Part shown: one piece after another, positions 4,166-64,000 of the stretch
How positions within the stretch are numbered: the first letter of the stretch is position 1
How the letters are laid out: each line of letters begins with the position of its first letter
NCBI RefSeq assembly: GCF_000143415.4
Contig: NW_003314290.1
Location: 1,095,481-1,159,480 of the forward strand
DNA length: 64,000 bases
Origin: Selaginella moellendorffii
Lineage: Eukaryota; Plantae; Lycopodiophyta
Reading direction: 5' to 3'
Position numbers and translations under genes: made by a program
The notes under the pieces: generated by a model
What the model saw: the letters and a program-made list of their open reading frames with translations, nothing else
Database searches by the model: none
Told to the model about the DNA's origin: nothing

Positions 4166-4375
4166 CACTGCGCTGTGCTGCTGCGGCGCGGTGTTGTAGC
4201 GATCGAATCGAAGAAAAAATTCGCCACTGGACACCCAAACCTGCGAGAACTTTCCTGGCGGCGCTGGAAGATCCGGCCGGATTTTCGGATGGAATTGGAG
4301 CGGTACACCACACCCCGCGCACACTTTCCTCCGAAGCGATCGAATGGAAATGATTTGGGGAAAAGCCTCTCTCAT

Positions 4376-4800
4376 TTATATACCGCGAAAGAGAAGGGGT
4401 ATATTCCGTCCGTGCGAGGAATCGTGATTGACGGCGTCCACGGGCAGACGAGGTCTGGGCACTGCCGCGTGGAATATAACGAACAGTATATCTCATTCCA
4501 AGGTTATAGGGTCAAGGTCAGTCAGTCCAGGTGAGGCAGCGGTTGTACGGGTCTGCCGTACGAACACCGCGTACGCGTTAAAATCCTTATAATCCGGATT
4601 TTGCGGAAATGTGGCGTCCATGATCCATCCAGAAGAATGTATAGGGGAGATGAGAGCACGAAACCTCTCTTTTCTTAGACTAGGCAAGCTATGGCTATGG
4701 TAACTACGCACAGTTTTATTAAAGTTCCATCTTGGTGGTCCTGGGAAAAGAACAGTTAAGTGAATTGTTGACTTTTGGGATACCAAAGGGGGAAGGTCAA
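4376..4800 (-). promoter_or_regulatory. VQ gene promoter: TATA box, W-boxes and CGCG boxes
   Basis: TATATAAAT on - strand ~4375-4383; TTGACY at ~4510, ~4767, ~4795; CCGCGT/ACGCGT at ~4465 and ~4567-4578. Confidence 0.45.
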
Positions 4801-5633
4801 ATCTCGTGCTGGAATCGCGATTAGGGCAAACCATTAGAAAACTTGTTTCTTGTGTTTAAAAAAATAGGATGTTGCGAGGATCCGCGAATTGATCTGGAGG
4901 TAGCTTCCTCAACACCTTCCTCGCTCTTGCCACGTGTGCACGTACATCTGCGCCATTAATCCCCGACAACGACGCCATTTTCTGTCCTCTGTTTGGGAGG
5001 AGAATATTCTATACTTTTTTTCCAGCACATGTAAAAAAGTTCTGCTTCCAGATTTTATTATTATTCTTTTTAATGGGTGTGTAAAAATCGTACACAACCA
5101 TTGCTTTTCTTAATCCTTTTTATGATTATTAAACACCAACTAGGCGGTGGTTTACAGTGGACACAGCGAGCATATGGATAGATAGATTTGTCAATAGAAC
5201 ACTCTTTTAAGAAAAATCAGCTTTTTTTACTAAACTTGCACTACAACTTTGCATTGAGTTGGGATCACATATAAGTGTTTTTTGGCCTTTTCTTGTGTTA
5301 AAGGCTTTTGAGACTGTAAGTGTTAAACTGCCTTCTGATGTAGGTCACATATTCCTAGTTGAAACCTATAGCAGTTGAGATCACAGGGCTAATCAACAAG
5401 GAGCATCTTACAACATTGTTAATATTGTTACTAATCAGGTGCCAACCACTGGATATTAACAAAGAGCATTCTACAAAATTGTTAATATTCAATTTTAATT
5501 TCTTTACCTGAAAAAAAAAAAAGAACAAGGATAAAAGAAGGGTGATTGATTTCCATTGACTACCCAGAATCTTACATGTTTTGATCACTAGCTTTCCACC
5601 ATCTCGGTAGAAAAAAAATTCCTCTTTAGAAGG

Positions 5634-7058
5634 CTAGCTTTTCTTCGTAGCTCGCAGCTCTTGGACCAATCTCTTCATCTTGTCCAGCTCTTGCGAAGTT
5701 TCGACCAGGACAATCCCCCTCTGGTCGTGGATCATGCAAGCCTTGAAGATCTGCCCGCCGCAGCCATACTCGACGATGTAAGCGCCGCCATCCTCCTCGA
5801 ACTGTCTCACAACATGGCTCGCCAGCCCAAGGCTGATGGATCCCTCCTCCCTCTCCATGGCAAACTTGTGATCTTCCCACTCTTTTGGAAGGCGGTGATC
5901 TCCCTCTCGCAAGAACAGGCTCATTCCTCCACCCCTCTCCAGTGATCCCGTGCCGAAGCTCACAATCATGGTGTGGTGGTGCGTTTGCTCCGGGAAATCA
6001 ACCACGCTGCCAACCTTGACGCCACCTCTGATGATCCGAGCGATCTTCTCCACTCCATGCATGATCCCGGGGAGCTGGGCGATGGCGACGAGTAAGATCA
6101 CGCGGCAGGAGCAGCCCCCGGACTCGAGCGCTAGCAGCAACTTGTCACACAAGCTCTGAAGATCACCGTCCTGGCACCGGCGAAGATCCGCGATTATGAG
6201 CTTGACGCTCCGCTTCTCGGCCAAGAGCCTGACGATCCATTCGACGCTCGTCTTGCTGCACTCGCGCACCAGGTATGGCGAGATCTCATCGCCGCCGAGC
6301 TTCTCCTGGAGACGAGAGTACCAACCAAGTGGAAGCGGCACAAGCTTGAGCGTCTTCTTCTTCTTGGCGAGCTTGGAGCAAGCCTCGGGTTCCACTCTCG
6401 CCCACTCGTCCAGCTCCTCGTCGCTGATCCGGAGCCTCTTCTTGAGCCCGGAAACGCTGGTAACGTAGCTTGGCAAGATGTTGCTGGCGATGCACTCCTG
6501 GAGCAGCCTCTCGGCGATCAACCTCCTGTTCTTGAGCTTCTTCCCGAGCTGATCCAGAGAAGGCACGTCCATCTCGCAGCTCGGGAACTTCCGGAAGAGG
6601 CAGGCCTTGCTCGCGAGCTGCTCGGCGACGTAGAGGAGCTCTTCGTTCTCCAGCGCGCGGATGCTCACGAGGCTGGCCATGGAGATGGAGTTGCTCGGCA
6701 GGCCTCCTCCGGTGGGGAGCCTGCCATCGCCCAGCGGGAGCTTTCCTTGCGCGTTGAGCTCCAGAGCCTCCATCCATTTGTCGAAGACGTGATCGTCCGA
6801 GGCGAGCAGCCTGTGCACCGTGAATGTGTCACGGGCATCAAACGCCGAGTTGACGAAGCTCTCGAATTCCTACAAAGTTTTCAGCCTTTGGTTTTCTTTT
6901 TCTCTCCATTTTTCTGTTTGTTCTCTCTTTCTGAGAACACTTGCCTGCCATTCTCGGGAGTGAGCCTTGCCCCGGCTCGATTTTTGGGGCCGACCCATTT
7001 CCACCCATTTGCTCCTCGCGTGTCTCAGGGTCGCGTGGAATGGCTCCGGAGATGTCAT
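5634..7058 (-). CDS. Intact ~449-aa orphan protein: helical N-region plus degenerate beta-class DNA amino-methyltransferase-like domain; exons 7058-6945 and 6869-5634
   Basis: Long open, codon-biased exon; GC-AG intron (TGGCAG|GCAAGT ... TTTGTAG|GAA) removes an in-frame TAG; SVKLIIADLRR (motif IV position), LESGG, YIVEYGCGG...RGIVLVETSQE (motif I/II position) in beta-class order; homologous to the transposon gene at 60.2-63.1 kb. Start could be 7058 or 6998. Confidence 0.8.
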
Positions 7059-7329
7059 GTCCCCTGGAAGGTCTGATTAGTCTGGTGGACACAGACAGAT
7101 GAAAGAGAGCATACCTCGGAAGAACCACAGAAAACCCTAGATCCTTGAGTATAATCCCAAGAATCTTGTTTGCTAACAAAATGAAAGCAATATTAATATT
7201 TCTAAGTTTTTTATTTTCAATTGTTGCTGAAAATTTTCATGGGTCTGCACCTCTAAGAGATTGTAAGATTTGATATTGAGTGTTGATAGTGGTTTTATTA
7301 ATTATAATTTACAAGAATGGCAATAATAT

Positions 7330-7505
7330 TTCCCACATTTAAAGGTAATATGTAGTGATGTTATCTTTGCTATGAAAATTATTCATTCTATTAATTTAAA
7401 AAATATAATTTTATAAATTAATATTTTATATTAATTATTAAACATTTAATAGTGAGCTTGCATATGGTCTATTCATGATAGTTATTTATATAGCACTAGT
7501 TTAAT
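7330..7505 (+). mobile_element. Highly eroded Helitron helicase C-terminal remnant
   Basis: AT-rich; VIFAMKIIHS resembles FAMTINKSQ and a downstream FYIALV resembles LYVALSR. Confidence 0.3.
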
Positions 7506-8224
7506 ATAGTTAAATGATTTATATGAAAAAACTTAAATTCATGTATCTCATGTAATTTAGACCTTTTTTTATTTGTGTTTTATATTTATATGAGGCTAAT
7601 AGCTTATATTATCTTTATCACTAAAACATCCATTTCAAGTTATGAGATTGTGAAGTCTAAGTGTACGGCTATGATGCAATATTAATATTAATGTAGTGGG
7701 ATTTTAATAACCATTGGATTAAATATAAACACTTGCACTCTTATTTCAATTGTCAAACTAGGAAAAGGGCAATTGTTTGGAATAACTTCATTTGCCAACT
7801 AAAAAAGAGGTAATTATATAAACTAGTTATTTTGATGGAAGGTGGGAAGAGTATTCATGAGGCTCGTGTAAAGCCACAGTGTTTGGAAATGTTCTTCCAA
7901 AGTCCCGAACTATAGAAAAGAAAAAAAATAATCCTTTTGCATAATGACCAAAGGCATAATTATGTGGTGAAGAAGTCCCAGAGATCAATGGGACTTAATG
8001 GTCAACCTTCAGGCTTTAATTCAATAACAATGTTATTAAATATTACTATGACTAAAATAGGACATATTGAAGAAGTATTAAAGAAGAGTGTTTTTTATGT
8101 CTTTAAGCATCTTAAAGATGTTAAAGTGTGGTCATGGAATGATCACTCATAAACAGATGGCTCAGTCTTTGAGAGATAGAACTAGGGTACGTGTGATCTA
8201 TTGAATTACCAATGAGACAAGGGT

Positions 8225-8350
8225 AAATAAATATAACTTTAATGTAATGAATGGTACCTTTGGGGTGTTTATCATGGGATTAAACATGTGGAGCACTTGG
8301 ACTCAATGCAAAGGCTGAGTGGCATACATGTCATTCATAGGGCTAGCATG
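8225..8350 (-). repeat. Fragment of the LTR family seen at 24.2, 45.4 and 51.6 kb
   Basis: ACATGTGGAGCACTTGGAC...GAGTGGCAT is the reverse complement of ~45528-45570. Confidence 0.55.
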
Positions 8351-9221
8351 TTGTGAGACACAAAATCCCTAGGCCTCAATGTAGAGCCGAAAGGGTGCCA
8401 TGTGGTAGTGGCTGCAGCGAAAGCCAAACGAGCGTAACACATTTGGACTAAAAGTTCCGACTTGAAAGGTTGAGAACCTTAATGGTGTTCCCAAGCTTTA
8501 TTGTTGCGGTCCAATTGTGTTGAGAAGATCTAGAGTGCTCAGTGAGGAGCTCAAAACTCAGCCATGCTTTGTGGAGTTGTAGGGAGGGAATCTTTGGGAG
8601 TCTCACAATTGGTTGTAAAGACACAATGTTCCTGAGTGTGAGCAAATCAGAGTGGCAAAGAATTGGCACATGGAGAATCTTGCCACCTTTGTAGGCGAGT
8701 TAGGCAGATCATGTACAACAGTTGTCACTAAAGGCCCTAGCGCAAGGAGGAGCCAGGCAGAGTACTGGTGACCAGTTCTAAAGCAGTTGGAGAGCTGGGA
8801 GACCCATAGAATCAACGGGACTGTGTCTCCCAAAAATCAACGGGGCTGCTGCACAGAGCATCAGCGACGCAAGGTGGCTTGATGGGCAACAATTGCTGCA
8901 AGAGGAGAGCTGGGAGCGGCCAATAACAAGCAATAACAAGCAGAAAGTCCTTAGGTGAGAGGAGGAAGAAAGGAGAGTTTGGCTTTACCCCTTTGTTCCT
9001 TTACTCCTGTGTTTAAGGGTTTGGTTTGATTTAAATTTTATTAAACACATGTATATTCTGTTGGATACTCATTTTCTCTTTGTTACAGTCCAGATCTGAG
9101 TCGGGCGCTCCCAGCAAGCCTTAGCCCGCATTGCGTCCAGGTGGGTAGAGATTATGCTGTCCATGATTGGCGATGCAATTCCAGCCTAGATTCTCTAGCT
9201 AGAGATCCAGCAGGATGTGTG

Positions 9222-11652
9222 ATGGCTCCCAGCAAAGAGGACGAGAGACACGAGAAGATCATCCGCGGGCTGCTTAAATTGCCTGGAAATCGAAGATGCG
9301 TCAACTGTGGTAGCCTGGTATGACAACGATTCTTGGGTCTTATCCCCTCTTTCTTGAGAATTTATCTTTTTTTCTCTTAAGCAGGGACCGCAATATGTGT
9401 GCACTAGCTTCTCCACTTTCATTTGCACACTTTGCAGCGGGATTCAGTATGTTTATTCGTTCCCTCTCTTCGATCTTTTCTCGTTTCCAGTTTCTCACTC
9501 GTACTTACAGTCGAGAATTCTTGCATCGCATCAAGTCTATTTCCATGGCCAAGTTTACTGCCGGGGAAATCAGCGAGCTCCAGGCCGGTGGAAACGATGT
9601 ATGTATCTAAATTTACAGTAGCAGCAAATTAGATTCACAGCGTTTTTCACTTGTTCGTGTAGCAAGCTCGACAGGTTTTCCTCAAGGCATGGAACTCGGA
9701 CAGGAACATATTCCCAGACAGCAGGTACTTAGATCCTTGACGTGTTTTTAGGAGAGCAAAATGATTTTTTTTCGTTTCTCATCAGCAATCCCGATAAAAT
9801 CCGCGAGTTTATAAAGCTTGTGTACGTCCAGAGGCGTTTCACTGGAGAAAAGGTATAACTATACAGCCAATGTTAAACATGACCGAAAGTTCTTCTTCCC
9901 TTCCATTCTCTTTCTGTTTTTTTTTTTTTTTTCTTTTCCAGCAGCCCAGTCGTAGTCCAATGCATGAAACTCCTGAATATCGCGAGGCTCGCCCCTCTCC
10001 TCGTACGAGCTACGGCGGACTCGCGTACGGTAACCGAGACTTTGTGAGAACAATCCCCGGAAGAAGAGAAAACGGGGGTGCGACTGTGGAAGACAACGGT
10101 GAAGACGACGTGAAATCTTCGCCCCAGTCGCCTCCAAACCAGAAAACAGCCAGTGGGAGTAAGAGGGAAACGGTCATTCGCCAGTTTCTACAACCTCCAG
10201 TAAGAAACATTCGCTAGTTTCTTCTTGGTTTTGCCTTTTGATCCTCGGTTCTTTTTCGTTCCAGGTGGAGAAACGCAAGGACCAGCAGCTGCAAAGAAAC
10301 TACTCTAGCGGGAGCATAGTACCGGACCAAACCAGTCCCGCAGCTCGACCTCCACAAGTCCAGCGCTCAAACTCGCTCTCTCTCAAAGATCTCATGACTG
10401 ACGAGAAAACTTCCCACCGGCCAGACAATCCAAAGACGCCACCACGATCCGCGACAAAGTCGAGAAGTCTGATCGATCTTAATACCGACCAGCAGCAAAA
10501 GGTACCACACTCTAGAAGCTCGCCAGTGACAACCAAGTCAAGCTCCACACCGTGTCTGGTCGATCTCATCTCCGGCGACGCAAGCAACCACGAGAGTGTC
10601 GCCAGTACAAAGTTTCGACACGACACCGATGGCAGCCGCGACCTGATCGATCTCATCTCTTCTCCGGAGGGAGATTCCTCGCAGCCGACGCAGGTGGATC
10701 CTTTCGTGACAACGAGTTTCGCGGGTCTTGATCTGGCTGCTGATCCTTTTGCACGTAGTGGACCAGTTCAAGCTCAAACAGGCACGAATTTCACGAGTTT
10801 TAGCGCTCCTGGACCAGCCAATCTTCCACAGTCCATTCCATCAGAAGTTTCACAGGGAGTTTTACCGGGTGCTCCCCCGCAGTACCCGTCGAGCTTTCCA
10901 GGAATTTCACCGAATTTTACCATGCCACCTTCAGTTGGCTTTCTACCAGCGGCGCCGTCGCCATCGATTTCTTCTTCGGGTGGCTTTCTATCGAATTCTG
11001 CTTTGATGACTTTCCAGCAGTTTGATCCAGCAGCCATGAACGTTGGAGTACAAGTGAGTGATCTAAGAGACTACGCATTTCTCTCACATACGATCTCTTT
11101 TATTGTTACAGGGAGCTGTTCATCACGTGAACACTTTCGGACCTCCATCGGTAGTATTTTTATACGCAGACTTTCTTGCATGACCTCTCTTTTGTTTCTT
11201 CTCTCCAGAATCAAAGTCTGGGCTACTTTGGAGTGTCAACCAGTGTCAATCCTTTTGACCACTCCCAAAGTCAGGTAAAAGGGGAACAATTATTTGCAAA
11301 AACTCTAAACTTGAAATGTTTTTGCAGTATGCCCCTCTAGGAACTACACATGTACAAGTCCCTCCAAATTTTTACCATCCAAGTAAGAACCTGGAGAGAC
11401 AAAAAAAACAGAAATTAACCTTGATTAAACCGGTTGACATCACAGATTATCATTGGGAGGCCACTCAAGTTACCATGTAAGCGTTACTCTTCATTTTTTT
11501 TTTAGGATGCTCTCTCTTTACAGGAGCTGGCACTCAAAAGTGATGTGGTGTTCGTGTAAACCTCTAACAGGCAAATTCCTCCAGTGTTCCAGCAGCACCA
11601 TCCAACAACAACAACACCATCATCGTCCTCGTCAGGCAATCCATTCGCATAA
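9222..11652 (+). CDS. ARF GTPase-activating protein, AGD14/NIG-like, multi-exon
   Basis: EDERHEKIIRGLLKLPGNRRCVNCGSL|GPQYVCTSFSTFICTLCSGI|REFLHRIKSISMAKFT (C4 ArfGAP finger); LIDL and DPF motifs; C-terminal SGNPFA stop at 11652. Confidence 0.9.
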
Positions 11653-24241: not shown

Positions 24242-25530
24242 TGTAAGTGACTAAATTTTCCATTCTACTTTAGTCACTTAGCCACATCTTCAACCATTTG
24301 GAGGAGTCTCCCTCACAACCTCTATATGTCCTATTCTAGACTTAAGGACTTGCTACTCCCGAGAACGGCATCTATGCCACTCAACCTTTGCACTTGGTCC
24401 AAGTGCTCCATGTGTTTGATCCCATGACCGATACTGAAAATATCAATCTATTACACTAAGGTTATGCCCATTCGTCTTTGTTATGCTAGTGGTCTAACAC
24501 CATCTACATCACAGTTTTATCTTTCAAAGATTAGACCATCCGTCCATGAATGATCAACTTATATCTCCTCCTTAGCATGCTTAGGATGCCCACAAACATG
24601 GGGAACAACCTTCCCCAATATCCCCTTTTTGATCCTCACCAAGTTTCTTTCCAACCATGGCTATGTTTGCCAACATTGCAATTGAGAAAGGGTCTAAAAG
24701 CTCACCCATTATGTCCCATTAACCTCTGGGACTTCCTTGTTGTATGACTACATCCTTGGTCACCACACAAAAGGATTGCTCCTCTTCCTTTCCATAGTCT
24801 GGGACTCTGGAACAACATTTTGAAACACTACAGCCAAGCCTTATGACCATCTATTTTTGAGTGCCCTAGCCATAGGGCTAAAGCGAGGTTTTGATGAGCC
24901 ACATTAGGTATTCAAGTAGGTAGTGCCACCTATGCTTGGACTGGGAGCATCGACCATTTGATCTCCCGAGGGAACTAAAGTCAACTTTTGAACACTTCAC
25001 CAAACTACCCCACTTGTTTGTTTGTATTCACTCTAGCCTTGGACTTTCTAGTGGTTATATCATCACCTAACACATGGGTATACTTTCTTAGGCCACACTA
25101 GCCTTTCTTGGCCAAATTGGTTCTATTGGAGTCCAAGCCCCACAATCTCCCCTACTATACTTTTGGTACACACCCCCCCAAAGGGACAATTGCTTTGGCA
25201 TTTCACCTAACAGTAGTATTTGGACTTGGACTGTGGTCTTGAACTCGAACTTGGTCTGGAACTCGGACTCGATCTCGGTCTCGGTCTTCATCTCAGGTCC
25301 ATCTCAAACTCTCCATCTTGGGTCCATATAAAATTCTATCTTAGGTCCATCTCGGACTCCATTTCAAACCCCATCTCAGGTCCTTCGTTGGGAGTTCCAC
25401 TCCCACTGTCGACTTTTTGAGTCAGAGCTTTTTAGTCCAAATGTATTATGCTTATTGGGCTTCTACTTTGGCCACTACTATGTGGCACCTTTTTCGTGCC
25501 ACTTTGGGGCTTAGGGATTTTTGTCTCACA
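24242..25530 (+). mobile_element. Solo LTR (family Y) inserted in the RT of the old Ty3
   Basis: TGTAAGTGAC...GTCTCACA termini, TSD AAGAT on both sides. Confidence 0.85.
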
Positions 25531-27580
25531 AAGATGAATTTCACACACTTAAGGACTCCACAACTTTCGAATAACACCCTTTTCCAACATTTTCTTGACA
25601 TTTACATGTAAAATCTTAATCTCTTTGTGTGACTGATAACTAACCAAAACCTTGATTGGACAAGTATCCTCAGTTGGAATAGGATGACATGTGGCAATTT
25701 TAGCCCTAAACAATAGGTCAAATTTAAAAGGATTGGTATACTCCTTCATAAGCCAATAAACCATTGCAATACAAAGACATCAGAAGGATTGGAAAAGGGA
25801 AGAGAGGAATAAAATAGAAACATAAAGGGAATTAATAGGGAGATAAAAGTGATAGAAGTAGAGGTAAAAGCAAAGGTAGAAGTAGAGAGATAAAAATATA
25901 CAAAAGTGAAAGGAATGAAAGAAATATAAAGAAGTATGAGATAAACGGGAGAAGCATTAAAGTCACATTTGGCATAATTGCACCACAATCAATTTATACT
26001 AAGGATAAGGTCAAAAGCTTGACTCAACACCACCCGTAATGACTACAACTCAAGCTCAAGATCACCCACTCATCCCATGCATATGTGTGTGTACGGCTGT
26101 TGCTATAAAGAATGAAAATTAACTCTGCCATATGACGCAAATGTAAATAGTAATGTGTTGTAACAAATTGAGCAATAGAAGATAAACTTGAACCAACATA
26201 GAGAGAATAATAGAAGACTTTTTATTATAAAAACAAATTTGAAAAGTAAACAGTAGATGAACTAGTGCTAAATGAAACCCTTGATGATACTTTTAAAAGA
26301 AAGATGGAGGGATTATTGATTTATTTACGTAAGGTCCTTCCACTTCTTGCATAACTCCTTATTTCCCAAATGCATCTCGGTATCCATTGTAGCAACACTA
26401 ACAGGACCTTGTTGATGCCAAAGTCTCTACTAAAGAAATGGAAGTCACCAATCTGGAAAATGCCAATAATGTTGATAAGTGTGATGAACTTTATCACACG
26501 CCTAGCAATAGACATCACAGCCATGACTGTGTCTTTGCCCTTGTCCTTGAACTCAAGCAATAGTAGCATCAACATCCATTAAAATAGGACCATCTCCCAT
26601 AGGAAGTGGAGTTAAAGGGTGTGTATCGAAAAGTGGAAAAAGTGATGTCTCATAATGTTATGCTAAACGAAGGGCATTATCAAGGGTGGCTGAAGCAAGT
26701 GCATGCACAAGTCCTGTAAGATCTTGACGAAGTGTTTGCCACAACATTCCCAACTTGATCCGCTCTAATATATTTGGCTTTACATGAAGCATGAGGCTTC
26801 AAAAACAAATTTCAAATTGCATCACCAACTTAAATGACCTTTGATGAAAATGATACAATTGTTGGAGGGCATTATCACAATCATTAAATGTCCAACTATG
26901 CATTTAAAGACATTCAAAAGAATACTCTAATCCTCATGAGTGGCTGTGCTCAAACCATTGACCATTGCAGCACAATCCCTTGGAGACACGTGGGAAACTC
27001 ACACGAACATTGAGTATCATTCTAAGAACAATATAAGGCAATCACTGTGAAATGATCAAACCAATGGTACACATCATCTTTAAGATTTCTGCGAAAAAAC
27101 TCTGGCCAAACACAAAGATTGGCAACAAGAGCATGAGGAGTTATACCATGCACTATGAATGCGGCCATCAACTAAGTCTGATTGTTTAGCTATAGCCATA
27201 TAGCATCAAGCAATTGCGTCAACTACTACTATAGAGTCAAAGGAGGAAGAAGCTATTGCTTTGCTATGAAGATGAATGAAAAGAAATAAGCAAAAGAGAA
27301 GAAGTTGAGAAAAGTTAGAAAAAAAGGGAGATTTAAACAATGCAAAAGCTAGATTTAAACCAAAAATCCCAAATCTCAACACTCTTCAAGGATAACCTTT
27401 CACCTCCACTAATGTGAGTGCATGGAATATGGAAAGAAAATATATTAATTAGCCCAAAAACTTTATAGGAGCGAGTGGTCTAAATTGAAACCAATTTGAT
27501 AGCTACCAAAATCCCACTACGCTAACATTAGTATACGGTATTGTAGCTGTACACTTGGACTTCACAACTCCAAATTTAAA

Positions 27581-45396: not shown

Positions 45397-47035
45397 TGTA
45401 AGTGACTAAATTTTCCATTCTACTTTAGTCACTTAACCGCACCTCCGACCACTTGGAGGAGTCTCATTCGCAACCTCCATAAGTCCCATTCAGAACTTGG
45501 GGCTTGCTAGCCCCGCGAATGGCATCCATGCCACTCAACCTGTGCACTTGGTCCAAGTGCTCCACATGTTCGATCCCATGACCGACACCCCAAGGTACCA
45601 CTGACATACCAGCCCGTTACGCTAGGCCATGCCCATCCACCTTAGTCACATTGGTGGTCCAACACCACCTACATTACAATCCTGTCTCTCAAAGACTAGG
45701 CCATGCATCCATGAGTGGCTTTCCCAGATCCACTCCATAGCATCCTCAGGATGCTTGCAGACATGGGGAATAGCCTTCCCCAATGTCTCATTTCTGGTCC
45801 CCACCAAGTCCCTTCCTGTCCATGGTCATGTTCACCAACACTGCCACTGGATCAAGGCCCACATGCCCGACCACTACGTCCCACAGTCCTCTGGGACTTC
45901 CTCACCACACGACTGTGTCCTTGGTCACTACCCCAAAGGACTGCTCCTCTTCCTTTCCACAGTCTGGGACTTTGGGGCAACGTTTCGGAACACCGTGGCC
46001 CTACGCGGGCCTCGTAGGTACTCTCCTCGCCTTTTGCCTTTGGGTGCTCTAGCCATGGGCTTAGAGTGAGGTTCCATTGAGCCACACCGGGTATCCAAGT
46101 AGGTAGTGCCACCCACACTTGGACTGGGAGCATCAGCCAGTCGATCTCCTGGGGGAACTAGAGTTGGCTCTTGAACACTTCACCAAGCTACCCTGCTTGT
46201 CGGTCCGTATTCACTCTAGTCTTGGACTTCCCAGTGGGCAGCTCATCACCCAACATTGGATCTGGCCTTCCTGGGCCAAACTGGCCTTTCCTGGCCAAAT
46301 TGGCTCCACTGCAATCCTCCCCCTACTATACTTTTGGAGCTCACCAAACCCCCCAGGGTCTGGGAGACGAACGCTTTGGGCTTTCACCCTCTCAGACTCG
46401 AACTCGGACTCGGACTTGGACTCGGACTCGGACTCGGACTCGGGCTCGGACTCGGGCTCAGGCTCGGTCTCAGCCTCGGCCTCGGTCTCGGTCCCGGTCT
46501 CGGTCTCGGTCTCGGTTTCGGTCCCGGTCTTAGTCCTGGTCTCGGTCTCGACCTCGGACTCCATCGGGTCCTTCTCAAATTCCATCTCGGACTCCATCTC
46601 GGACTCCATCTCGGGTCCATCTCGAACTCCATCTCGGACTCCATCTCGGACTCCATCTTGGACTCCACCTCGGACTCCAACTCGGGTCCATCTCAGACTC
46701 CATCTCGGACTCCACCTCAGACCCCAACTCGGGTCCATCTCGGACTCCATCTCAGACTCCACCTCGGACTCCAACTCGGGTCCATCTCGGACTCCATCTC
46801 GGACACCTCCACGTGTCATGTGTTGGTCCTTTTGGGTCCCTTTTTGGAGCCTCGCTTATTGCTCGCTTCATGCTCGTTCCTTGAGCACTCTGTTGGGAGT
46901 TCCACTCCCGCTCTCAACCTTTCAAGTCGGAGCCTTTTAGTCCAAATGTGTTACGCTCGTTTGGCTTTTGCTTCGGCCACTACCACATGGCACCCTTTCG
47001 GCTCCACTTTGGGGCTTAGGGATTTGTGTCTCACA
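45397..47035 (+). mobile_element. Solo LTR (family Y) inserted between protease and RT
   Basis: TGTAAGTGAC...GTCTCACA; TSD GTCAC/ATCAC; host pol continues on both sides. Confidence 0.88.
46390..46810 (+). repeat. CTCGGA hexamer / CTCCATCTCGGA dodecamer satellite inside the Y LTR
   Basis: Directly visible tandem array; eroded versions at ~25.25, ~49.36 and ~52.5 kb. Confidence 0.9.
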
Positions 47036-48819: not shown

Positions 48820-48919
48820 NNNNNNNNNNNNNNNNNNNNNNNNNNNNNNNNNNNNNNNNNNNNNNNNNNNNNNNNNNNNNNNNNNNNNNNNNNNNNNNNN
48901 NNNNNNNNNNNNNNNNNNN
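48820..48919. other. Assembly gap (N run)
   Basis: 100 N. Confidence 1.
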
Positions 48920-53184: not shown

Positions 53185-56100
53185 TCCTCCACGTGACATG
53201 TATTGGTCCTTTTGTGTCCTTTTTTTAAAGACTCACTTATTGCTTGTCCCATCCACAACCCATTTACACTTCATTGGGAGTTTCACTCCCACTCTTGACT
53301 GTCCAAGTCAGAGCTTTTAGTCCAAATGTGTTACTCTCGTTTGGCTTTTACTTCGGCCACTACCACATGACATCCTTTCAGCTCCACTTTTGGGGCTCTA
53401 GGATTTGTGTCTCACAACTCCACTATCCATAGATGAAGTTCAATATCCTTATCAAACAATAAACCATTTTATAAAATAACACCAACATGTATTATCCTTT
53501 CCATCCTTGGCACCTAACTAATATTTGTCAATAGTTTGACACCAAAGGCTCACCATGCCTTATCCATCTTTTAAAGAGCATAGTCTTTCTAATTTAGAAA
53601 CTCATTTGACCACTTATGGTGGTCCTTCCCCTTTTATTCTTTTAGTTCATGCTAAATGTGTTAAAGACATTATCTCTATTTCAATTTCACTACTCATTTA
53701 GGAATAACTTTGGCCTCTACCAATATAACCATCGCATTTTGGAACTTTTAATTTTGATTTTTTATAGTTAATTTCTTAGGTGTCTCTAACACCTTGCATT
53801 GCATATATTATGCAAACTCAATTTCCCCATCCTAGGAAGTTCTTTACTTGAAAGCACCATCATCCTCTTTTCTATTTTGTGCCACTCTAGGCACTAAAAT
53901 CCATCTTTCTATAATTTATGCTAGGATTATTTATGGCCTTATCATTTGGTTACCTTGTCGCTCTTTCCCTTGGAGCTTTTGCTTTGCCAAATTAAAGTAT
54001 TTAGAAATTCATCATTAGAAATATATTTCCCTTTCCATAATCCGTTAGCACCAAACACATGAGTGTTCCTCGCTTAACTTTTCTTTTTGGATTCTTTTCA
54101 ATGATTTCCATGGCCCATTCTTGGTCTTTAGTCTTTTGCTTCTATCCTTTGATTGTTGCCCCAAGCAACATAGGATCATTACCTCCATCCTTAAGGTATC
54201 ATTTTGATTCAATAGCAAAGGCTCTACTTTGCCAAATCCATAAAAGTGTTCATCCTTAATAGGTCTCTTTAGCATTTTCTACTATAGGCTTTATGCATGG
54301 CTCAACCTAACAACCCACTCATAAGTCCCTTTCTTAGATTCGCAATACCACTACATTGCTACAATTCATTTCCTTTAGGTGTTTTTTCCACTTGGTCACT
54401 TTGACCAAGCCGCACAATTATCAATAGTTTAAATCAACACTTTGAACTAAGAACTTTATTCTTTAACTTCACAAAGATTTTATCCTTGTTTTAGCTATAA
54501 GATCACCTAATGATTTAACCTTGACACCTTAACAGGTTTACTAATTGATACTAAGTCTTCTAGACTTTTAACTTGTTAACCATGACCCCAGAGGCATCCC
54601 CCACACTTGGAAATATGCCTAAGCCAACCTTTTTGGCCAAGGGTCCATAGTAATTGAGATTGAATGTCCCCATTTCATTCACCACGTTTTTGGTGCCACT
54701 TGCACCAAAGTGTTCAAATTAGATATACTAAATTTTCACACTAAGCAATTTAACTGTGCATCACGACTCTAAAGCATCCCCCCCTTGGCAGTGTGCCCAA
54801 GTCAATCTCCTTATTAAGAGTCCATAACCACCAAAAAATGAGTGTCCTCATATTCCAAACCATCACCATGCCATAATGAGTTGGGACTCAAACCTAAATA
54901 CTAAAGGGTTGGAATTCAAACCCAACCTCCGTATATGCATCTATAGATGGCATTACTTAGAAAGCCTGGCGTGATTCCTCATGCTAATGCACCAACTTAT
55001 ACTTAAAGCGCGTTATGGATCACAACTCAAAATTTAATTCCTCCCAACTACCAAGTCTTTTCACTAGATGAGTTTGTGATCATGCATGGACTCCTCCATG
55101 CTTAACCCTATATGCCACCCTTTTTGAAGTTATTCCTTCAAATAAGGTTTTTTTTTTTTTTTTTTTTGTTCTCTTGACTTGCCAATCTTGCTTTAGCAAG
55201 TCACTGTAAGCAACCAAAGAGAATGACTCAAGAAATGATCCAGGGGTTCAAATATAAAGGGAAAGGGCCCATGAACAAAAGTGCACCCCCTTTTCCAATC
55301 GGTTAAGGGTCTTGGGATAGTTGAAGTTAAGTGTCCTTGGGTCTGAACAGTACTGTGCTGGGTGATCTCCCGAGAAGTCCAAACTCAGAAGCTTACAGTC
55401 ATCTGACCAGCGTAACATGGTTTCATGCATAAGCATGAAAGTCTTTAACCATTGACTTTCATTCAAAGCCATCTTTTTGAACACTCAAGAACTACTTCCC
55501 TAATCCTAATGACCTTGAACACTCGAGAATTACTTCCCCAATTCTAATAACCTTGTCTTGTGGCAAATTTCAAATCCATACTTTTGCTGTGCTATTTTAA
55601 TTTTACACTTTCTTTGAACCATTTACATTTGTTTTTCTAAACACCAACTTACCTAGAATTATCTTTGGGAACCTTAAAGGAACTTTATCCTTTAGCTTGT
55701 TAAGACCTCTCCTTTCATAAGCTTTCTAATTGCCATATGGTCTACCATGGATAATTCCATACTTTAGATTTTTTATGGCATCACGGTTGCTAATAGTAAC
55801 ACATTAAAGCACCCACTTGATTTTTCATTCCTAACTTGTATAACCACCCTTGGTTATAGCTTTCAATTCTTACGATTTAGTTTTATTTTTTTACTACTTG
55901 TTTTTTGGCTTTATACCTTCACTTTAGTTATTTTCCTCCCATCTAGGAGGGTACTTTTGCACTTTCTACCATGCCTTAGCATTTCTTGGGATAAATCTAC
56001 TCAATAACTTAGGGAATGCATTTTCAATTGGGATATGCTCACTATATAATCCCACATACCGGGATTAACGTCACTAAGCTCTATTTCGTTAAAGTGGGAT

Positions 56101-56331
56101 TTATTCAGTAAAATGGGACTAGGTACAAATTTTCAAATATTTGAAAATGACGTGAAATTATATATTTTTTGTCCAGGGGCTAGACATATCTGGGGCATGG
56201 TGACTAGCGTGGTGACTTTGTGTCCAGACTGAGTCCATCTGGTTGTATAATAAATCTCATTGTCAAGGTGAACAAGCCGAATCTGAAGCTAAAGAAGAAC
56301 AATGGCATGCGCGCACACACTATTTGTTTGT

Positions 56332-57930
56332 TCATTGAGCGTGTGGTGAGCTTTCCAAGATGAACGTCATTCCTAACCCTACAATCTGACGGCCAACATA
56401 TTCACTGGGATGGCATGGGGCCCCACACGATACTGCAAGCCTTTGCTCCTCCTCCAGCTGAACCCTGTATGGGGTTCGATCGACAAGGGCCTTATGCAAG
56501 GGTTGGCCGTTCAGCTCAGTTTGCGCACTTTGCAGAGACCTTAAGTGTTTTGCTAGAGACGCAATCATCATGTTTGCACCCCCGCCACCCCATAGAGGTA
56601 CAAAGAAGTTCCCATAGTTCTGGGCACCATGCCCATGAGCGATTATGCCAAACAGAGACACAGGCAGCTGCATGGATGAAGAGATTGCCTTGGGGGCAGG
56701 ATTGAGTCGAGGTAAGCACGTCTTTTTCTAGTCCATTTTGTCGTGGATGATGTAGAGGTAAGAGTCAGGTCTCTCCATGGAGAGAATCTTGTTATGATAA
56801 TATGCAGTCCTGCAGCTTCTCTGCTCGATGTTGTGGTCGAGCCGCCTTCTAACCAACGTCTCTCGCTCTTGAGCGATGCAAGAATTCTTCGACAAAGCCA
56901 TTTTGATAGCAGTGCACTTGTCACACTTTGAAAAGCTGGAGTACTTTCCTATACTCACATCCCTGAGCCTGTTGCTCCACAATCTACTAAATCTAGATTG
57001 GCTCAGCTTCCTGTAGCCATTACTCTGGAGTTCCTGATTCACATCTTCCAATATGGCCCCCTTGGTATACATGGAAGGGAGAACTCGTTGGGTGTCTCGA
57101 GTTCCATCTTCCAAGAGGCGGGTTTTATGTGGTTGCTGCTCGCTACATGTCTCGACAAACCTCTTGAAGATTGCCTCTCCATATACAACATGACCCCTGG
57201 TTTTGTGAGTACCGTCGTTCCCATGGACTGCCTGTTGAACCCTTTGTTCCTCGAACTCAGTTTTGATTCTGTAGAATGTGGTTCGAGGGACTCCATAAAT
57301 GATTCTCCATGCCTTCATGCAGACCAAACCCCTCTGGAAGACCATGCCCCCCACCTGATGTTCTGAAGCATCAACAGATGACCGTAATGCCTCATATACA
57401 AAATTGCGAGCTACTTTCCAGGACAATGTCTTGTATCTTGCTCTCTCCTCTTCAATAGCATCCCAATCAACATGTTGACAGCACCTCCTCTTGCAACAAG
57501 CAACTGTCGAGACCATTCGAACCTCCATCGCCATTTTCTGCCTTTTCGGTTCGTTGCTCAGATCCCTTTGGCTGCGCTTTAGGAAGGTGTACTTTCTTTT
57601 CCCATGAAGAGATGTTCTGTCATCAGTTGTAGTGGTGTTTAATTGTGAATCCTTCACATTCTCAAACACTAAGTGCCTCAATTTCCACCGCATAATGCTT
57701 CCAATAGTCAGACTGTTTTCTTCTGTATCAACAACCTCTAAAATCGCAACTCCAATATCATCCCAGCCCAATTCTTGATTAGCAACCGCATCTCTTGGAT
57801 CGACAACTATGGCTAAGCCCTCAGCTACCACCTCCCCCTAGGGGTTGTTTAGAAACACCTTTGCCTGAATCCATGTAGCACGGTTCTTAAGATCCACGGA
57901 GGGAACATGCGTCGCATTTGCGAAGGCCAT
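56332..57930 (-). pseudogene. Sola-like (DUF7869-type) transposase, nonsense-mutated and apparently internally deleted
   Basis: CCKRRCC...VCMKAWRIIYGV...HGN...FSRLW...FSKCDKC...H...Q...R..Y...IIHDKMD*KKTCLP...LFGIIAHG; TAG at 57838-57840 and 56728-56730; downstream catalytic DN../GHT.D motifs not visible. Confidence 0.72.
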
Positions 57931-58294
57931 TCTGAAAGTGCAGAAAAGAAGTTAAGACCATACAAAAAATGATTGGAGAATGGCCTAAATCATAACATAC
58001 CAAACAACCTCAATAGCATGAGGCCACATGCTATTATTCAAACATGCTATTGACACCCACGTGAAATTTCGCATTCACAAAATTGGCATGAGGCCTCATG
58101 CCATCTTGATAAACACATAGCTGCAGGCAAGTAAAAACATACATGACAATATGCTAGCCATGAAATTGCAAGGGCCCAAGATGGCATGTGGCCTCATGCC
58201 ATTTCTAAATGTGGTCTTAAGCCATTCCATGGTGAACATACCAGGAAGCACAAGTGCCGAATATCAAGAGGAAGCGGTAGCCACACCAAAGACA

Positions 58295-58420
58295 GTGCCG
58301 CTCGCAACACCGCAACTACTCATAGCGCCGCTCGCAACACCGCAACTGCTCGTAGCGCCGCTCGCACAAACTGCCACTCGCATAAACTGCCGCTCGCAAT
58401 GCCGCAACCGCTCGTAGACG
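58295..58420 (+). repeat. 30-bp tandem repeat (GCGCCGCTCGCAACACCGCAACT...) upstream of the transposase
   Basis: Visible as APLATPQLL repeats in ORF 58151-58417. Confidence 0.7.
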
Positions 58421-60250
58421 CATAAACCACAGCTCACAACACCGCTTACACAAGCAGCGCTCACTGCGCTCAACGGAACCAAGAACACGGCGCACAAAAA
58501 TGATAGACCTAGGAATGAGTTCGAGAATTCAAGAATAACACACGCTTGAACGTCACATCAAATCCTCTGACAAACCAGATCTTATGATTCCTTTGACAAA
58601 TTTCAAACTGAGTAGCTTCTAGACTTTGCTGTCGGACGTTAAACTTTGTCACATCATGTCCTTGCCTCGATCCAGCTGTGCCATGTCAGTGATTCAAACT
58701 TTGCCATGCCATGTCAGCGATCCGCGCCAAGATTATTCGCCGTGTAAAGGAATAATTATGCTGTGTGTATACGTCCATTTATGGCAATATAAGGCCACAC
58801 GCCATTCAAAGAATAATGCTAGTCGAGCATTTTTTGGTGCATTTTTTGGTTCAAAATTGCATGAGCCCACATAAAGTTTACCTGTACCAAAAATAGAAAT
58901 AGCTTTATTTACTTGGGAATTTAAGTGGTTGAGGCATTTTTAAACTTACAAACACATGCCCTACTTACATTCTTTTGGTTGCTTAAAATTCAAAAATATT
59001 ATAAACCTTTCTTTTTGCATTTTCAATGTTTTCAATTATGGTTTTTGATTTTCGCAGGACCAGCCTAGTAATCTATTTGCATCCCGTCATGTTTATAGCT
59101 AGCTTTCGTTTGTCCCCTTCGCTAGCCTGAGATACATCTGCTCGGCATCTACCTTTTACAGCATTTGCCCAGAAAGGGCATCTTTCTTCACGCAGCATTT
59201 GCCACATGTTTAGGGTTTAGGGTTTAACAATTCAGTAGCTTGATAAACATGCAAATACAGAACTTGATGCAAAATCCTTTGATATGTCACAATGCCCCTA
59301 GGACCATAAACACATTTCAATAGAGAGGGTCCTTTCATTTCATAACTCCTTACGTAGATCTTGGTGAAACCAGAGTTAGTGAAGTTGGTTTCTTGTAATC
59401 CTGCATCTGATTGTGATGTCCCTTTGCAATGTCGATGGAAAGGTCAATGCACACCAAACTGTAGAATCTTGGAGCAAAATAACGGTCGGATTTATGGCAA
59501 ATGCCCCTGAAACATTGTAAGGCTCGTGTGGTCTTATGTGGTGTCCGATCGAGATGCTTCTTTGCAGGGTCATCAAGAAGGACATTGTATACCATTCTTT
59601 ATTTAGCTGAACATTTGGCATTTTTGGAAATACAAGATGCTTTGGAATATCCAATCATGCATGGTACAAATATAGCGAGGGTATTAAATGATATCCCAAT
59701 CATGATCTTTCTTTTGGATTTCGCGTGCATGCAGTCCGAGGAATGATGACATTGCGGATTTCTTTTGGATTTCACGTGCATGCATGCGCGCGGCGATCCA
59801 GAAATTAATGGTGGCGCCCAAGTCCGAGGAATGATGACGTTGCGGGATTAGTGACATTTCGCGCGTGTGAGGTTAGGTTTTGCATTTTGCTTCGTATTCG
59901 CGCTCGCATCGCGCTCCCACTCGCGATCACGCTCACATTCGCGCTCATCTACCTTCTCTACAGGTTTCTCGTATGCATCGGCGTCCACTCGCGCTTGCAT
60001 CACATTCGCGCTTGCATCGCGCTCGTGTGCATCGGCATCCACTTCAAGACACACCTAGTTTGTAACTTCGCCGCCAACTCCGCCGCCCACTCCGCCACCC
60101 ACACGCAGCCCACTTGGCGTCCCGGGAGATTTCAGCGCCACTCTCCAACTGTAAGTGGCAGAGTAGCCTTGCTGCTACGATCCGCTGCACACATAGTGCA
60201 CATTCGCCAGCGAGTCCGGCCTCGATTGTCACGCCTCCATTCGGCTTCAA

Positions 60251-63090
60251 ATGGTAAGTCTTTTAGGCCAAGTAGAAAATGGCATGAGGCCACATGCCAT
60301 TCAGTAGCAACATTGGCATGCACCGATTGGGCTCTCGAGTGCAGTCCGGTTACAGATGGCGTGTAGCCTCACGCCATCTTAGGATGCAGCCTCAAAACAT
60401 CTGATGCAGTGGTGAATGGCGTGTGGCCTCACGTTATTTCCAACTGCTAGTTTTTCATCTGTCAGCTCTAATTGTTGTGCATTTCTGAACAGGTGAGGAA
60501 TTGCGTTCTTCTTCCAGCCACTATCAATGTGGATGCAGAGAAGGAGGAGGAGCTCACCAGTTGGACTTTCGGGATGGAAGGCGAGGATCTGAGGCTGTAC
60601 AACACAGATGGTGGGAGAAAAGAATGCATGGGGATCCTCATCCAAGTGACAGACACTCCATGCAATTCCATGCAAGAATATGGACTGGCACTTGTGGTAG
60701 AGACAACGTTCGCCTTCAAAATCCACCTTGCACATCCTAACGGCTTCCCGGAGGGGGGCAGCGGCTATGAGGAATTCCTAGAGAGAGCTAGGGAGAGGTT
60801 GTCCAGGAGGCCCACAATTTCAAAGACGCTATGGTCTATGAAGATCACATGGAATCCACGGACCTCACCTACGGCGATGTTCAAAAACTATATTCCAACA
60901 TTGAGCCGTTGAGAGTGACTCCAGTTTGCAAAACGAAGGGGAAGGGGGTCGATCTGGAAACTACCCCGAAGCAGAAAAGGGTGGTTAAGCTCAAGCCGAC
61001 GTCCGACTCTCCTGCTCCAAAAAAGAAGCTACTCGGTGATGCCATTGCCTCGGGTTCGAACACTACACCCACCAAAGCCACAAAAACCAGGACAAGGACG
61101 TGCACTAGCAACTAGCGCGTGGCAGGTAAGCCTCGTTGCATGTGGCATAGCATGTGGCCTCACGCCATTTCCATTGCAGGAATTCTCGAGTCTTCTCTCG
61201 AAAACACTGGGGGTCAATGACACACTCAGCATCCATAACATTCTACTCGCAACAAAAGTTGTTTTTGACAAATGGGTAGATGTGCTGAGGAGGTACCATG
61301 ACGGGGAGTTGCTAAACTCAATGGGTGTGGAGGACGGCCGGAAGCCTAATGATTTGAAGCTCAACGCCTTGCGTTTCTCGCGGTCTCTAGATGACGATGA
61401 CCTTCTGACAGTGGCTAATGCTCTTCTACGTGGTGAGGTAGTCTTCAACAAGACCAAAATGACTCCCGGTCATATTGTGACATATAAGGACTTGTGCACG
61501 ACTCTGAGAGCTCGTGCGCTATTGAAGGATTGGATCTTCGAGCAAGTGGTCGTGGAGAGGGTGAGCATCGACACCACGCAAGAGATGATGAAAGAGCTGG
61601 AGTTGTCAAATGAAGACATCGACGAGTACGTGAAGGGGGCCCCCAAGTTCATCGATCTGCTGCGGGATGCCACGAAAAGTAAAGCTGAGAAGTTGGATCA
61701 GTATCCAAATTTCATTAAGAGGGATGTCGACCGCTGGCTTCAGAAACAGCTCGACCCTGCAGTAGAGGCCTATCGAGAACCTTACCGGGTATACGTGAAT
61801 TCGGATGAGGATCAAAGGTGGAGGAGCATCATTTCCCGCGGAGATGAGCAGGTCAAGAACATCTTTTGTGTGATGGACTTCACAAACGAGGAGATCACTC
61901 ATGCAGACAAAGTCAGCTCCATCATTGACTTAATGGTGGGACTTGCGGAGGTGGAATCTTCAGTCCACTATATGATCTACGACTCCGAATCCTATCACAA
62001 GTTCTGGAAGGCCTTGAACGAGGTGAAGGCTCGGTTGAAAGGCAAGGAGATGCGGGAGATCCATGGGATAATGGCTAAGAAGAAGATACCGACGAATGTC
62101 CGCATCTTCACACTCGCCCTTGTTATTGGTCCTGCAGTAGAGTGGGACTAGAGTGACTTCCCAGCTTCGTTCGACAAGGCCGATCGAATTGATCTGAGGG
62201 AGGTCAATTTACCCATGCCTGAGGAACTGAAGACGGCTATGGAGCTTTCGAATCCAGAGAAAGCTCCAGGTGCAGCATGGGAAATGCTCAGCTGGGTCTT
62301 CAACGCAATAGCGGGTGGGTCACCTGCTTCCGACTCCAAGGGCAAATGCGTTGTCAAGTACAACTGCGGCGAACTATTCTTTCGAGCCGCACTACTCAAG
62401 GGTGTCCCGTGTGTTGCGGTGACAAATTCCATTGAAGAGGTGACTTCAATGGAGCATATAATTACAGTTGCCAAAGAAAAACAGTATCTTCTCTGCGAAC
62501 CTGGTGAGTACGCACTTTAAGTTTAAATGTTATCTCACAAGCTCTATATGCAGGAGCGTGGCCACCCCCAGATGCTGAAACGGCGTTAACAGCTACTGTT
62601 GAAGATACCCATGTTGGGCCGAGCTCACAACCTGCACAAGGTAAGGTCACGTGAGGCCTCACGCCATTTTGATTATAGATCTTTGTGAATATTCAGACAC
62701 GAGGACTGAAAAGCGCACTGGTGGCGCGTCGAAGAAGGACCGTATGTTCTGGGGGACCTTGCAAAACGGCTTGGAGCGATGGTGATAGAGAACCAGCCAG
62801 TCCAGGAAGTGGCTGCAGAAATCAACCAAATGGTAGATGGAACGGTATATCAGAAGCCATTTGATCGGACAGACACTAGTCATCATTTATGGCATGTATA
62901 TTGTCTAGCCAAGCACTATCTGCATCTCCATAATCTGCTCAACCAGATGGGTTCTTCGACCACTGAACATGAGCGTGGACATATTAGAGAAGAGATGGCA
63001 TTACTATTGGGTTTAAATCCTGATAGTGTGGAGAGTGATGAAATTCCAAGATTATTGTATAGGCGTTGGAGGCAAAAAATAACAGTCTGA
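60251..63090 (+). pseudogene. Transposon cargo gene with degenerate amino-methyltransferase-like domain; multi-exon, frameshifted
   Basis: ATG|GTAAGT 60251-60254; exon from 60493; intron 61126-61179; long exon 61180-~62503 with TAG at 62149-62151; later exons to 63090; aligns by eye with 5634-7058. Confidence 0.78.
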
Positions 63091-64000
63091 GATGGCATGT
63101 ATTTATTTAAAAATGTAACTTATTATGGCATGGGGTTCCATGCCATTGTATTAATATTAAAAGACAATTCTTTGAGAGGATTTGCATTATACTAGAAGTG
63201 TTACAGCATGTTATTGGAAGTCTACGAAGTTGTTTTATTAATAAGGGGAAAGTAAAGATTGAATGGGGACTTGGGCTCCACCTAAACTCAGAGCAACGGA
63301 GCCAATATTAAAAGGATGGAAAGAAATTGGACGACGATGACAAGGAGAAGAGAGAGGTGAAGCAGTGGCAAGGGGAGGAGAAGTGATTGAGTAGACATTT
63401 CCTTGTTTAAAATAAAATGGCATGTGCCTTAATGCAGTTGAATTTTGTTATATTTATATACTATATAAAGGTTTGGAAACCTTATTTTACAAGTGGGATA
63501 ATGACAATTCCCACTTTAACGAAATAGAGCTTCACTATGTATGGGCTTCTTTATGCCCATTGCTAGCCATGCTAAAATTTCTTTTGGCTTGGTCTAATTT
63601 GGATAGATGGACTTCTTCTATCTTCGCAATTTTAGACATTAGATAGCACTTTCTATCCATTATTCGCTAGGGACTTAGTCCCTTAAGCCTTATCTAATGC
63701 CTTCATGATACTAAATATCACTTCTTGGTGTTTTAAAGTGTTTAGATGCCCCAATGATAGCCTTCTTTAACAATAAACATTTTCCTTTTCAACATTGATT
63801 TATTAATTTGCAACATAAGCAATTTATCCCCCCGAGGGATATATCTAACTTTTTTATCCAAACAAAAAATCTTGAGTAGTTACCTTCTACCAATCCAATC
63901 AATTAGGCAACACTTTTTGCTTAATTGCCTCATAGTTATCAAGTCCTACAACTCATTGCTAGTGTTTCCACACCTCCATCATTATTTATCTTTTCCGTGC

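Follow-up and report, generated by a model that had tools for sequence, protein, structure and literature searches.

A free-standing Selaginella moellendorffii gene as a candidate domesticated accessory gene of Sola1-like transposons

How does an intact, free-standing gene come to share its protein sequence and its intron position with a gene carried by a transposon? The question is raised by a gene of the lycophyte Selaginella moellendorffii located at positions 7058-5634 (minus strand) of a 64,000-nucleotide (nt) stretch of contig NW_003314290.1, here called the window, which also contains a Sola1-like transposon with a homologous accessory gene. The host gene corresponds to LOC9650508, SELMODRAFT_416075 and SELMODRAFT_409495 (the last identified by a word-indexed protein search) and is annotated only as 'uncharacterized'. 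A first-pass annotation of the window had offered two explanations, an ancient domesticated transposon gene or the host donor from which the transposon captured its copy. Our reading, to which we assign a probability of roughly 0.6, is that the host gene is a domesticated accessory gene of Sola1-like two-gene transposons. Domestication of a transposon accessory gene is a known phenomenon and not a new kind of event.

The host gene extends from the A of its ATG at 7058 to the final base of its stop codon at 5634 and comprises two coding exons encoding a spliced product of 449 amino acids (aa). The coordinates proposed in the first-pass annotation were correct, as were the two peptides quoted there, that of the host, which reads from 6869 onwards, and that of the transposon, encoded at 61036-62520 on the plus strand. 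The features of the gene and its transcript, including the untranslated regions (UTRs), are as follows:

7115..7149, minus strand: 5'UTR exon 1, non-coding; the contig of RNA run X9 extends to 7149, the loose ends of the contigs from X3 and X11 correspond to 7117-7130, and the upstream limit is only the reach of the RNA contigs.
7064..7114, minus strand: 5'UTR intron, 51 nt, GT-AG, with its end 5 nt short of the ATG; the contigs of X3 and X11 break off at 7065 and resume as 7117-7130, skipping the stretch GTATGC...CCAG.
6945..7058, minus strand: coding exon 1, 38 codons (aa 1-38), ending PQKSSRGKAHSREWQ, which matches transposon PQKPGQGRALATSAWQ; the two haplotypes are identical here.
6870..6944, minus strand: coding intron, 75 nt, phase 0, GC-AG, 36% GC, with donor CAG/GCAAGT, acceptor TTTGTAG/G and an in-frame TAG at 6872-6870.
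5634..6869, minus strand: coding exon 2, 411 codons (aa 39-449) plus the stop codon at 5636-5634.
6330..6869, minus strand: N-terminal helical region, aa 39-218, where similarity to the transposon protein is strongest (BLASTP E = 6e-20).
6774-6869, minus strand: core EF..DT..H..L..VFDKW, within the N-terminal helical region.
6399-6446, minus strand: weak helix-turn-helix (HTH)-like stretch (HTH_17 E = 0.08, below the Pfam cut-off).
6345-6374, minus strand: lysine run KLAKKKKTLK, read as a possible nuclear signal.
5637..6281, minus strand: C-terminal alpha/beta region, aa 235-449, which may be a decayed fold of the PF01555 type, as judged from ESM Atlas neighbours, hhalign (E = 0.17) and motif spacing.
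6177-6209, minus strand: SVKLIIADLRR, a motif remnant at the position of the DPPY strand.
Within 6114-6140, minus strand: LESGG, a motif remnant.
5955-5999, minus strand: DFPEQTHHHTMIVSF, a motif remnant.
5736-5780, minus strand: YIVEYGCGGQIFKAC, a motif remnant at the position of DPFxGSGT.
5556..5633, minus strand: 3'UTR, as far as the RNA contigs reach; contig ends fall between 5512 and 5620.

Existing gene models place the coding junction differently. The 449-aa NCBI model XP_024528744.1 uses exactly the GC-AG junction 6944/6870, while two JGI models of 451 aa, one for each haplotype, use a GT donor 6 nt downstream and read WQAS/EF. We disfavour the JGI donor since CAG/GCAAGT fits the GC-donor consensus, the position of the transposon intron and the 449-aa NCBI model. 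Together, the database entries form a single 90% protein cluster of four records, the only cluster found.

The transposon with which the host gene is compared has the following features, in which TIR denotes a terminal inverted repeat and ORF an open reading frame:

56076..63532, no strand assigned: Sola1-like cut-and-paste element, 7.46 kb, with 27-nt TIRs at 56076-56102 and 63506-63532 (96% complementary) and target duplication CACT.
56728-57831, minus strand: transposase-like ORF, on the strand opposite to the accessory gene.
61036..62520, plus strand: part of the accessory gene homologous to the host gene (61036-61125, intron 61126-61179, 61180-62520), with an in-frame TAG at 62149-62151.

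Homology between the two genes is well supported. When the spliced host protein was compared with the transposon accessory ORF by BLASTP, host aa 23-218 matched at 27% identity (E = 6e-20), and a second, collinear match (E = 0.002) joins the host block YIVEYGCGG to VVKYNCGE of the transposon. In a global alignment the two proteins are 24.6% identical across 411 collinear columns reaching the C-terminus, with a further shared island, DFP..LRE..P.E..K.AME, located just past the transposon stop codon. Both coding introns are in phase 0 and interrupt the same WQ/EF codon, although they differ in length and donor: the host intron (6944-6870) is 75 nt long with donor GCAAGT and the transposon intron (61126-61179) 54 nt with donor GTAAGC. 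The homology, the common WQ/EF intron and the continuation of similarity to the C-terminus, all proposed in the first-pass annotation, are thus borne out, as is the absence of stops from the spliced host frame, which contrasts with the TAG at 62149-62151 in the transposon copy. A tblastn search within the window detected two homologous loci only, the host gene and the transposon accessory gene.

If the host gene derives from a transposon, it has shed the appearance of one. Within 4200-9300 we saw neither a palindrome nor an inverted repeat enclosing the gene, and nothing there resembles the element in DNA sequence, in agreement with the earlier statement that no TIR, transposase or palindrome lies nearby. 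In the transposon, by comparison, there is a 22-bp palindrome, ATGGCATGAGGCCTCATGCCAT, one copy of which is inside the accessory-gene intron 61126-61179; matches to it with up to four mismatches are confined to 58013-63125 of the window. The GC content at third codon positions (GC3) is 0.79 in the host gene, close to its neighbours (0.82 in the VQ gene, 0.94 in the DUF7086 gene), against 0.58 in the transposon accessory gene and 0.51 in the transposase, so the codon usage is indeed host-like as first described. The flanks of the host gene are 27-33% GC. The genes flanking it encode ArfGAP and VQ proteins, and the same arrangement is found on the other haplotype (GL377575.1, locus L001); the first-pass annotation had suggested synteny in related species as a check, and here the position is shared by the two haplotypes of one species.

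The host gene is transcribed. Sixteen sequencing runs contained at least half of the words sampled from 5400-7300, and contigs from four runs belonging to four studies (X1, X3, X9 and X11) span 5512-7149 only. The 5'UTR intron 7064-7114 is spliced in the X3 and X11 contigs and retained in those of X1 and X9; that X3 and X11 skip this stretch shows both that the runs are RNA and that the transcript is from the minus strand. In the X1 and X9 contigs we also observed small indel alleles within the 5'UTR intron (13 nt at 7079 and 2 nt at 7088). The transposon accessory gene behaves differently: the fraction of its sampled words recovered was 0.00 in five runs that contained 0.56-0.66 of the host stretch, and likewise 0.00 in eight other runs of studies whose runs have the host gene.

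The host gene is also under purifying selection. Between the two haplotypes it differs at 6 of 1425 positions (0.42%), versus 52 of 994 (~5%) in the 500-nt flanks (Fisher 8e-15), a divergence twelve times below that of the flanks; the corresponding values for the neighbours are 1.37% for the VQ gene and 1.43% for the ArfGAP span. Four of the six differences are synonymous, and a third allele, represented by the RNA contigs of run X9, contributes three extra changes, every one of them synonymous. The three alleles together yield 7 synonymous and 2 non-synonymous changes (binomial P = 7e-4 for 304 synonymous and 1043 non-synonymous sites, a test that uses small counts and ignores mutation bias). 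The first-pass annotation had listed what would speak against it, namely an insignificant alignment of the two proteins or a locus that is unexpressed, non-syntenic and neutrally evolving; we found none of these.

Several observations nevertheless weigh against domestication, and one of them concerns the transcript. The assembled contigs of all four runs keep the coding intron 6870-6944, although a rarer spliced form could be missing from them. In an mRNA that retains this intron, translation from the first ATG would run for 62 codons before meeting the TAG at 6872-6870, and the long frame can start only at M71, the eighth ATG. The NCBI model on the window haplotype describes just such an mRNA, its 379-aa product beginning at M71 with the coding intron kept. 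The spliced mRNA may accordingly be rare. The other points concern origin: a single transposon copy was compared, 25% identity permits either direction of transfer, and no orthologs were found in other Selaginella species, where an old domestication would lead one to expect them, the library coverage of those species being uncertain.

We read the intron retention as regulated or inefficient splicing and not as a sign that the gene model is wrong. That a spliced form exists is implied by the 449-aa NCBI model, so that the GC-AG junction predicted in the first-pass annotation stands as an annotated junction even though the assembled contigs of all four runs retain the intron. GC donors with the full CAG/GCAAGT consensus are typical of weak, regulated introns. 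Furthermore, the segment EF...DT..H..L..VFDKW (aa 39-70), where the host and transposon proteins are most alike, contains no ATG and begins directly after the TAG. Because it also lies upstream of the first internal ATG, this segment can be translated only from spliced mRNA, and its survival at an overall identity of 25% argues that the spliced form matters.

The same observations bear on the possibility that the locus is a transcribed relic of an old insertion with no plant function, its frame being open by chance or because of a recent origin. It is true that the gene is an orphan with no known domain and that the main assembled mRNA keeps a stop-bearing intron, which would leave most transcripts unproductive. 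A relic would not be expected, however, to present an open frame of 449 codons, a GC3 that has drifted to host values, a haplotype divergence twelve times below that of its flanks with 7 synonymous against 2 non-synonymous changes, or a best-conserved block upstream of the first internal ATG that is readable only from spliced mRNA. We consider a relic improbable.

If the host gene is functional, in which direction did the sequence move? As far as can be judged from the sequences, transfer from transposon to host is the probable direction and transfer from host to transposon an unlikely one. A full phmmer search of the host protein against 1.84 billion representative proteins returned only the protein itself, and the absence of any homolog outside S. 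moellendorffii disfavours an old host gene as the donor. Two further considerations favour movement from transposon to host: a Sola1 accessory gene has been reported from a distant lineage (PMC12477816), and host fragments taken up by a transposon are not normally still recognisable at an identity as low as 25%. Of the two origins first put forward, domestication is consequently favoured and the host as donor less so.

The less favoured origin would be a case of transduplication, in which a Sola1-like element captured the host gene and the transposon ORF is a decaying copy. Gene capture by plant DNA transposons is common, and the in-frame stop, lower GC3 and lack of detectable RNA of the transposon copy are what a decaying copy might display. 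Giant Ectocarpus elements without a transposase gene have likewise been compared to Pack-MULEs (PMC12477816). An identity of 25% would nevertheless make the capture very old, yet captured fragments normally decay fast, and the supposed donor has no ortholog in any other organism among the 1.84 billion proteins searched. Capture of the host gene thus seems to us an unlikely explanation.

What kind of protein would have been domesticated? At the sequence level the host protein is an orphan. Apart from the phmmer result, a word-indexed protein search returned only the host protein itself and nothing for the transposon ORF, a search of PDB sequences with the host protein returned nothing, and comparison of whole proteins and domains with Pfam and PHROGs gave nothing above noise. 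The PF01555 methyltransferase profile did not match the host protein or its domains even at E up to 10, and no Pfam match to ParB_N (PF02195) was found in the host protein. The N-terminal half (aa 1-230) is predicted to be helical; besides the lysine run it contains a stretch, aa 162-197, whose match to HTH_17 stays below threshold (E = 0.08). A fold-neighbour search with this half gave a mixed set and no usable match.

For the C-terminal half, several faint signals agree. In the ESM Atlas the host protein is modelled with a predicted local distance difference test (pLDDT) value of 0.60, and nine of the ten structural neighbours listed are PF01555 or ParB_N proteins of phages and bacteria, the tenth being an unnamed cluster. 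These neighbours align to aa 165-451 with template modelling (TM) scores of 0.36-0.41 by query and up to 0.62 by match, scores that are under the tool's own trust level. The feature neighbours in the Atlas likewise include the PF01555 family, at 0.81-0.84. When an AlphaFold2 (AF2) model of aa 215-451 was compared with the PDB by Foldseek, about two thirds of the best 50 matches were S-adenosylmethionine (SAM)-methyltransferase folds, among them CcrM, M.BceJIV and M1.HpyAVI, with a best E of 9e-3, TM below 0.3 and nothing at E<=0.001. Finally, hhalign of the host and transposon pair against 13 PF01555 members (Escherichia coli YhdJ and 12 phage methylases) aligned host 253-443 with YhdJ 27-260 and set SVKLIIADLRR on SVDLIFADPPY, the correspondence suggested in the first-pass annotation, at a probability of 0.4% and E = 0.17, a score equalled by 9 of 200 column shuffles.

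The low significance of these scores counts against a methyltransferase fold, as do the AF2 confidence values (pLDDT 40 for the whole protein and 43 for aa 215-451 with a three-row alignment) and the result for the transposon ORF, which on its own in the ESM Atlas gave no methyltransferase lead and only helical noise of low recognition. An atlas shape search with the AF2 model of aa 215-451 returned only weak, mixed matches.

The motif remnants are nonetheless arranged in the order of beta-class enzymes: ADLRR at 265, LESGG at 286, HHHT-MIVSF at 335, EYGCGG at 405. Motifs IV and I are 139 aa apart in the host protein, and 159-235 aa apart in those five of 13 phage methylases for which both could be located. 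At the motif IV position the host protein reads ADLRR and not (D/S)PP(Y/F), and the transposon copy is without PP(Y/F) too; at the motif I position EYGCGGQ of the host and KYNCGEL of the transposon have one loop glycine in common with DPFxGSGT. A DFP at aa 329-331 was considered as motif IV and rejected: it stands only some 75 aa ahead of the G-x-G loop, and the hhalign alignment assigns it to the HE-x-I region, motif VIII. The methyltransferase-like pattern of the first-pass annotation is present as far as the named motifs go but is no more than a lead, with no Pfam or PHROG match and an hhalign E of 0.17.

In the brown alga Ectocarpus, the element Sola1-1_Ec32 carries, opposite its transposase, a gene for a 1104-aa protein combining ParB with an N4C/N6A DNA methyltransferase (PMC12477816). 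Combining the individually weak lines from the structure models with this published ParB-methyltransferase nature of Sola1 accessory genes, we estimate that a decayed methyltransferase fold in the C-terminal half is somewhat better than an even bet. If the fold is real, no methyl transfer is expected from it, because it would have lost the catalytic (D/S)PP(Y/F) loop and kept motif I only in a degenerate form.

We give very little credence to the idea that the host protein has remained active as an N4C/N6A DNA methyltransferase of the kind described for the accessory protein of the brown-algal Sola1 element. The PF01555 methyltransferases among its ESM Atlas neighbours and a motif I remnant, GCGG, better kept in the host than in the transposon copy would suit such an enzyme; the ADLRR in place of (D/S)PP(Y/F) at motif IV, a motif I without DPF..GSGT and the lack of any methyltransferase profile match even at E = 10 would not.

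Domestication of the accessory gene would more plausibly have produced a two-part protein, composed of a helical N-terminal domain, conserved and about 200 aa long, with a possible HTH and nuclear signal, and a decayed beta-class, PF01555-type fold. Such a protein would most likely be a non-catalytic nuclear factor that binds DNA, chromatin or a partner through its N-terminal domain, with the dead methyltransferase fold serving as a scaffold. Production of the 449-aa protein would need removal of the weak GC-AG intron, and retention of that intron may limit the amount of protein made. A more specific and distinctly speculative proposal is that the dead host copy acts as a brake on its parent family, its N-terminal domain occupying the 22-bp palindromes or pairing with the transposon's accessory protein and so poisoning it, with the dose set by retention of the GC-AG intron. 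Were this true, the host gene would be a transposon-derived immunity gene directed against its own parent family.

The closest precedents are HDP2 and ALP2 of Arabidopsis, derived from Harbinger elements (PMC5339849, PMC7282668). Like them, the host gene corresponds to the non-transposase gene of a two-gene cut-and-paste transposon, now stands alone without TIRs, is expressed and is under purifying selection. It differs in being Sola1-like and not Harbinger-derived, in belonging to a lycophyte and, so far, to one species, in having no Myb-like domain and in having no known partner gene derived from a transposase. Sola1-1_Ec32 (PMC12477816) resembles the present case in that the transposon relative of the host gene also sits on the strand opposite the transposase, and in that the nearest ESM Atlas neighbours of the host protein are PF01555 proteins, some with ParB_N. 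The host protein, in contrast, has 449 instead of 1104 aa, no detectable ParB, no PF01555 profile match and no DPPY, and its gene lies outside a transposon.

With the beta-class PF01555 enzymes (YhdJ, CcrM and the phage methylases) the host protein shares a predicted alpha/beta structure and the order and rough spacing of four remnants: a strand followed by D, L-x-x-G-G, an H-x-hydrophobic strand and a G-x-G loop near the C-terminus. The resemblance in sequence does not reach statistical significance, the catalytic motif is missing and the spacing from motif IV to motif I is shorter (139 versus 159-235 aa). Catalytically dead partners with a methyltransferase fold are known in DNMT3L and METTL14, and the candidate fold of the host protein would likewise serve binding or scaffolding instead of catalysis; it differs from them in that no active partner enzyme is known for it and in that its fold is only putative.

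Among plant transposon genes, those known to have been domesticated are mostly transposases, together with the Myb-like partner of Harbinger elements. If our reading is correct, the host gene would be the first domestication candidate among Sola1 accessory genes of the ParB/methyltransferase type, whose products form a class recently described in algae to which no function is yet ascribed. An expressed and constrained copy standing on its own would provide a handle on the role of this class, and an origin could be offered for one of the many lineage-specific 'uncharacterized' genes of Selaginella.

The comparator transposon itself deserves some description. Its 4-bp duplication and TIRs are in keeping with a candidate member of the Sola superfamily; the transposase ORF has no Pfam match, and neither ParB_N nor any other Pfam family matched eight other ORFs of the element. 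A Logan contig (L015) holds a second copy of the element that is 97.6% identical and has the same terminus followed by unrelated DNA, which indicates that the family is young and multi-copy. Downstream of transposase relatives with 31-34% identity lie DUF7869 genes. On three short ENA metagenome contigs (L016, L017 and L018) such relatives were seen at 31-45% identity, with a DUF7869 gene next to them on L016 and L017 and faint DUF8039 matches on L016 and L018. No relative of the accessory gene was found on these three contigs, and the search for more element copies by way of the transposase relatives yielded only short Logan and ENA contigs, none of them with the accessory gene.

The transposase ORF of the element ends about 100 aa past an IIHDKMD motif, where its relatives run on into the DUF7869 domain, and the element is without 326 nt that are present in copy L015. 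The 7.46-kb element is probably a deletion derivative unable to move alone. Its accessory gene seems not to stop at 62520: the exon homologous to the host gene has a consensus donor, CCTG/GTGAGT, at its end, and further short exons separated by introns follow at 62506-62700 on the plus strand, with the palindrome occurring again in one of these later introns (62649-62670). The host gene ends with the homologous exon and may correspond only to the middle of the transposon's gene.

Upstream of the host gene, the two haplotypes are distinguished by a large indel, 7492-9373 of L001 having no counterpart in the window. The only repeat near the gene, a dispersed one unrelated to the Sola1-like element, lies 0.8 kb upstream of it at 7836-8475, and further members of the same repeat family are found at 24363-24829, 25409-25531, 45505-47036, 49902-50400, 51732-52250 and 53304-53418. 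The repeat-rich middle of the window also contains runs of N, representing assembly gaps, at 48820-48919 and 53011-53169.

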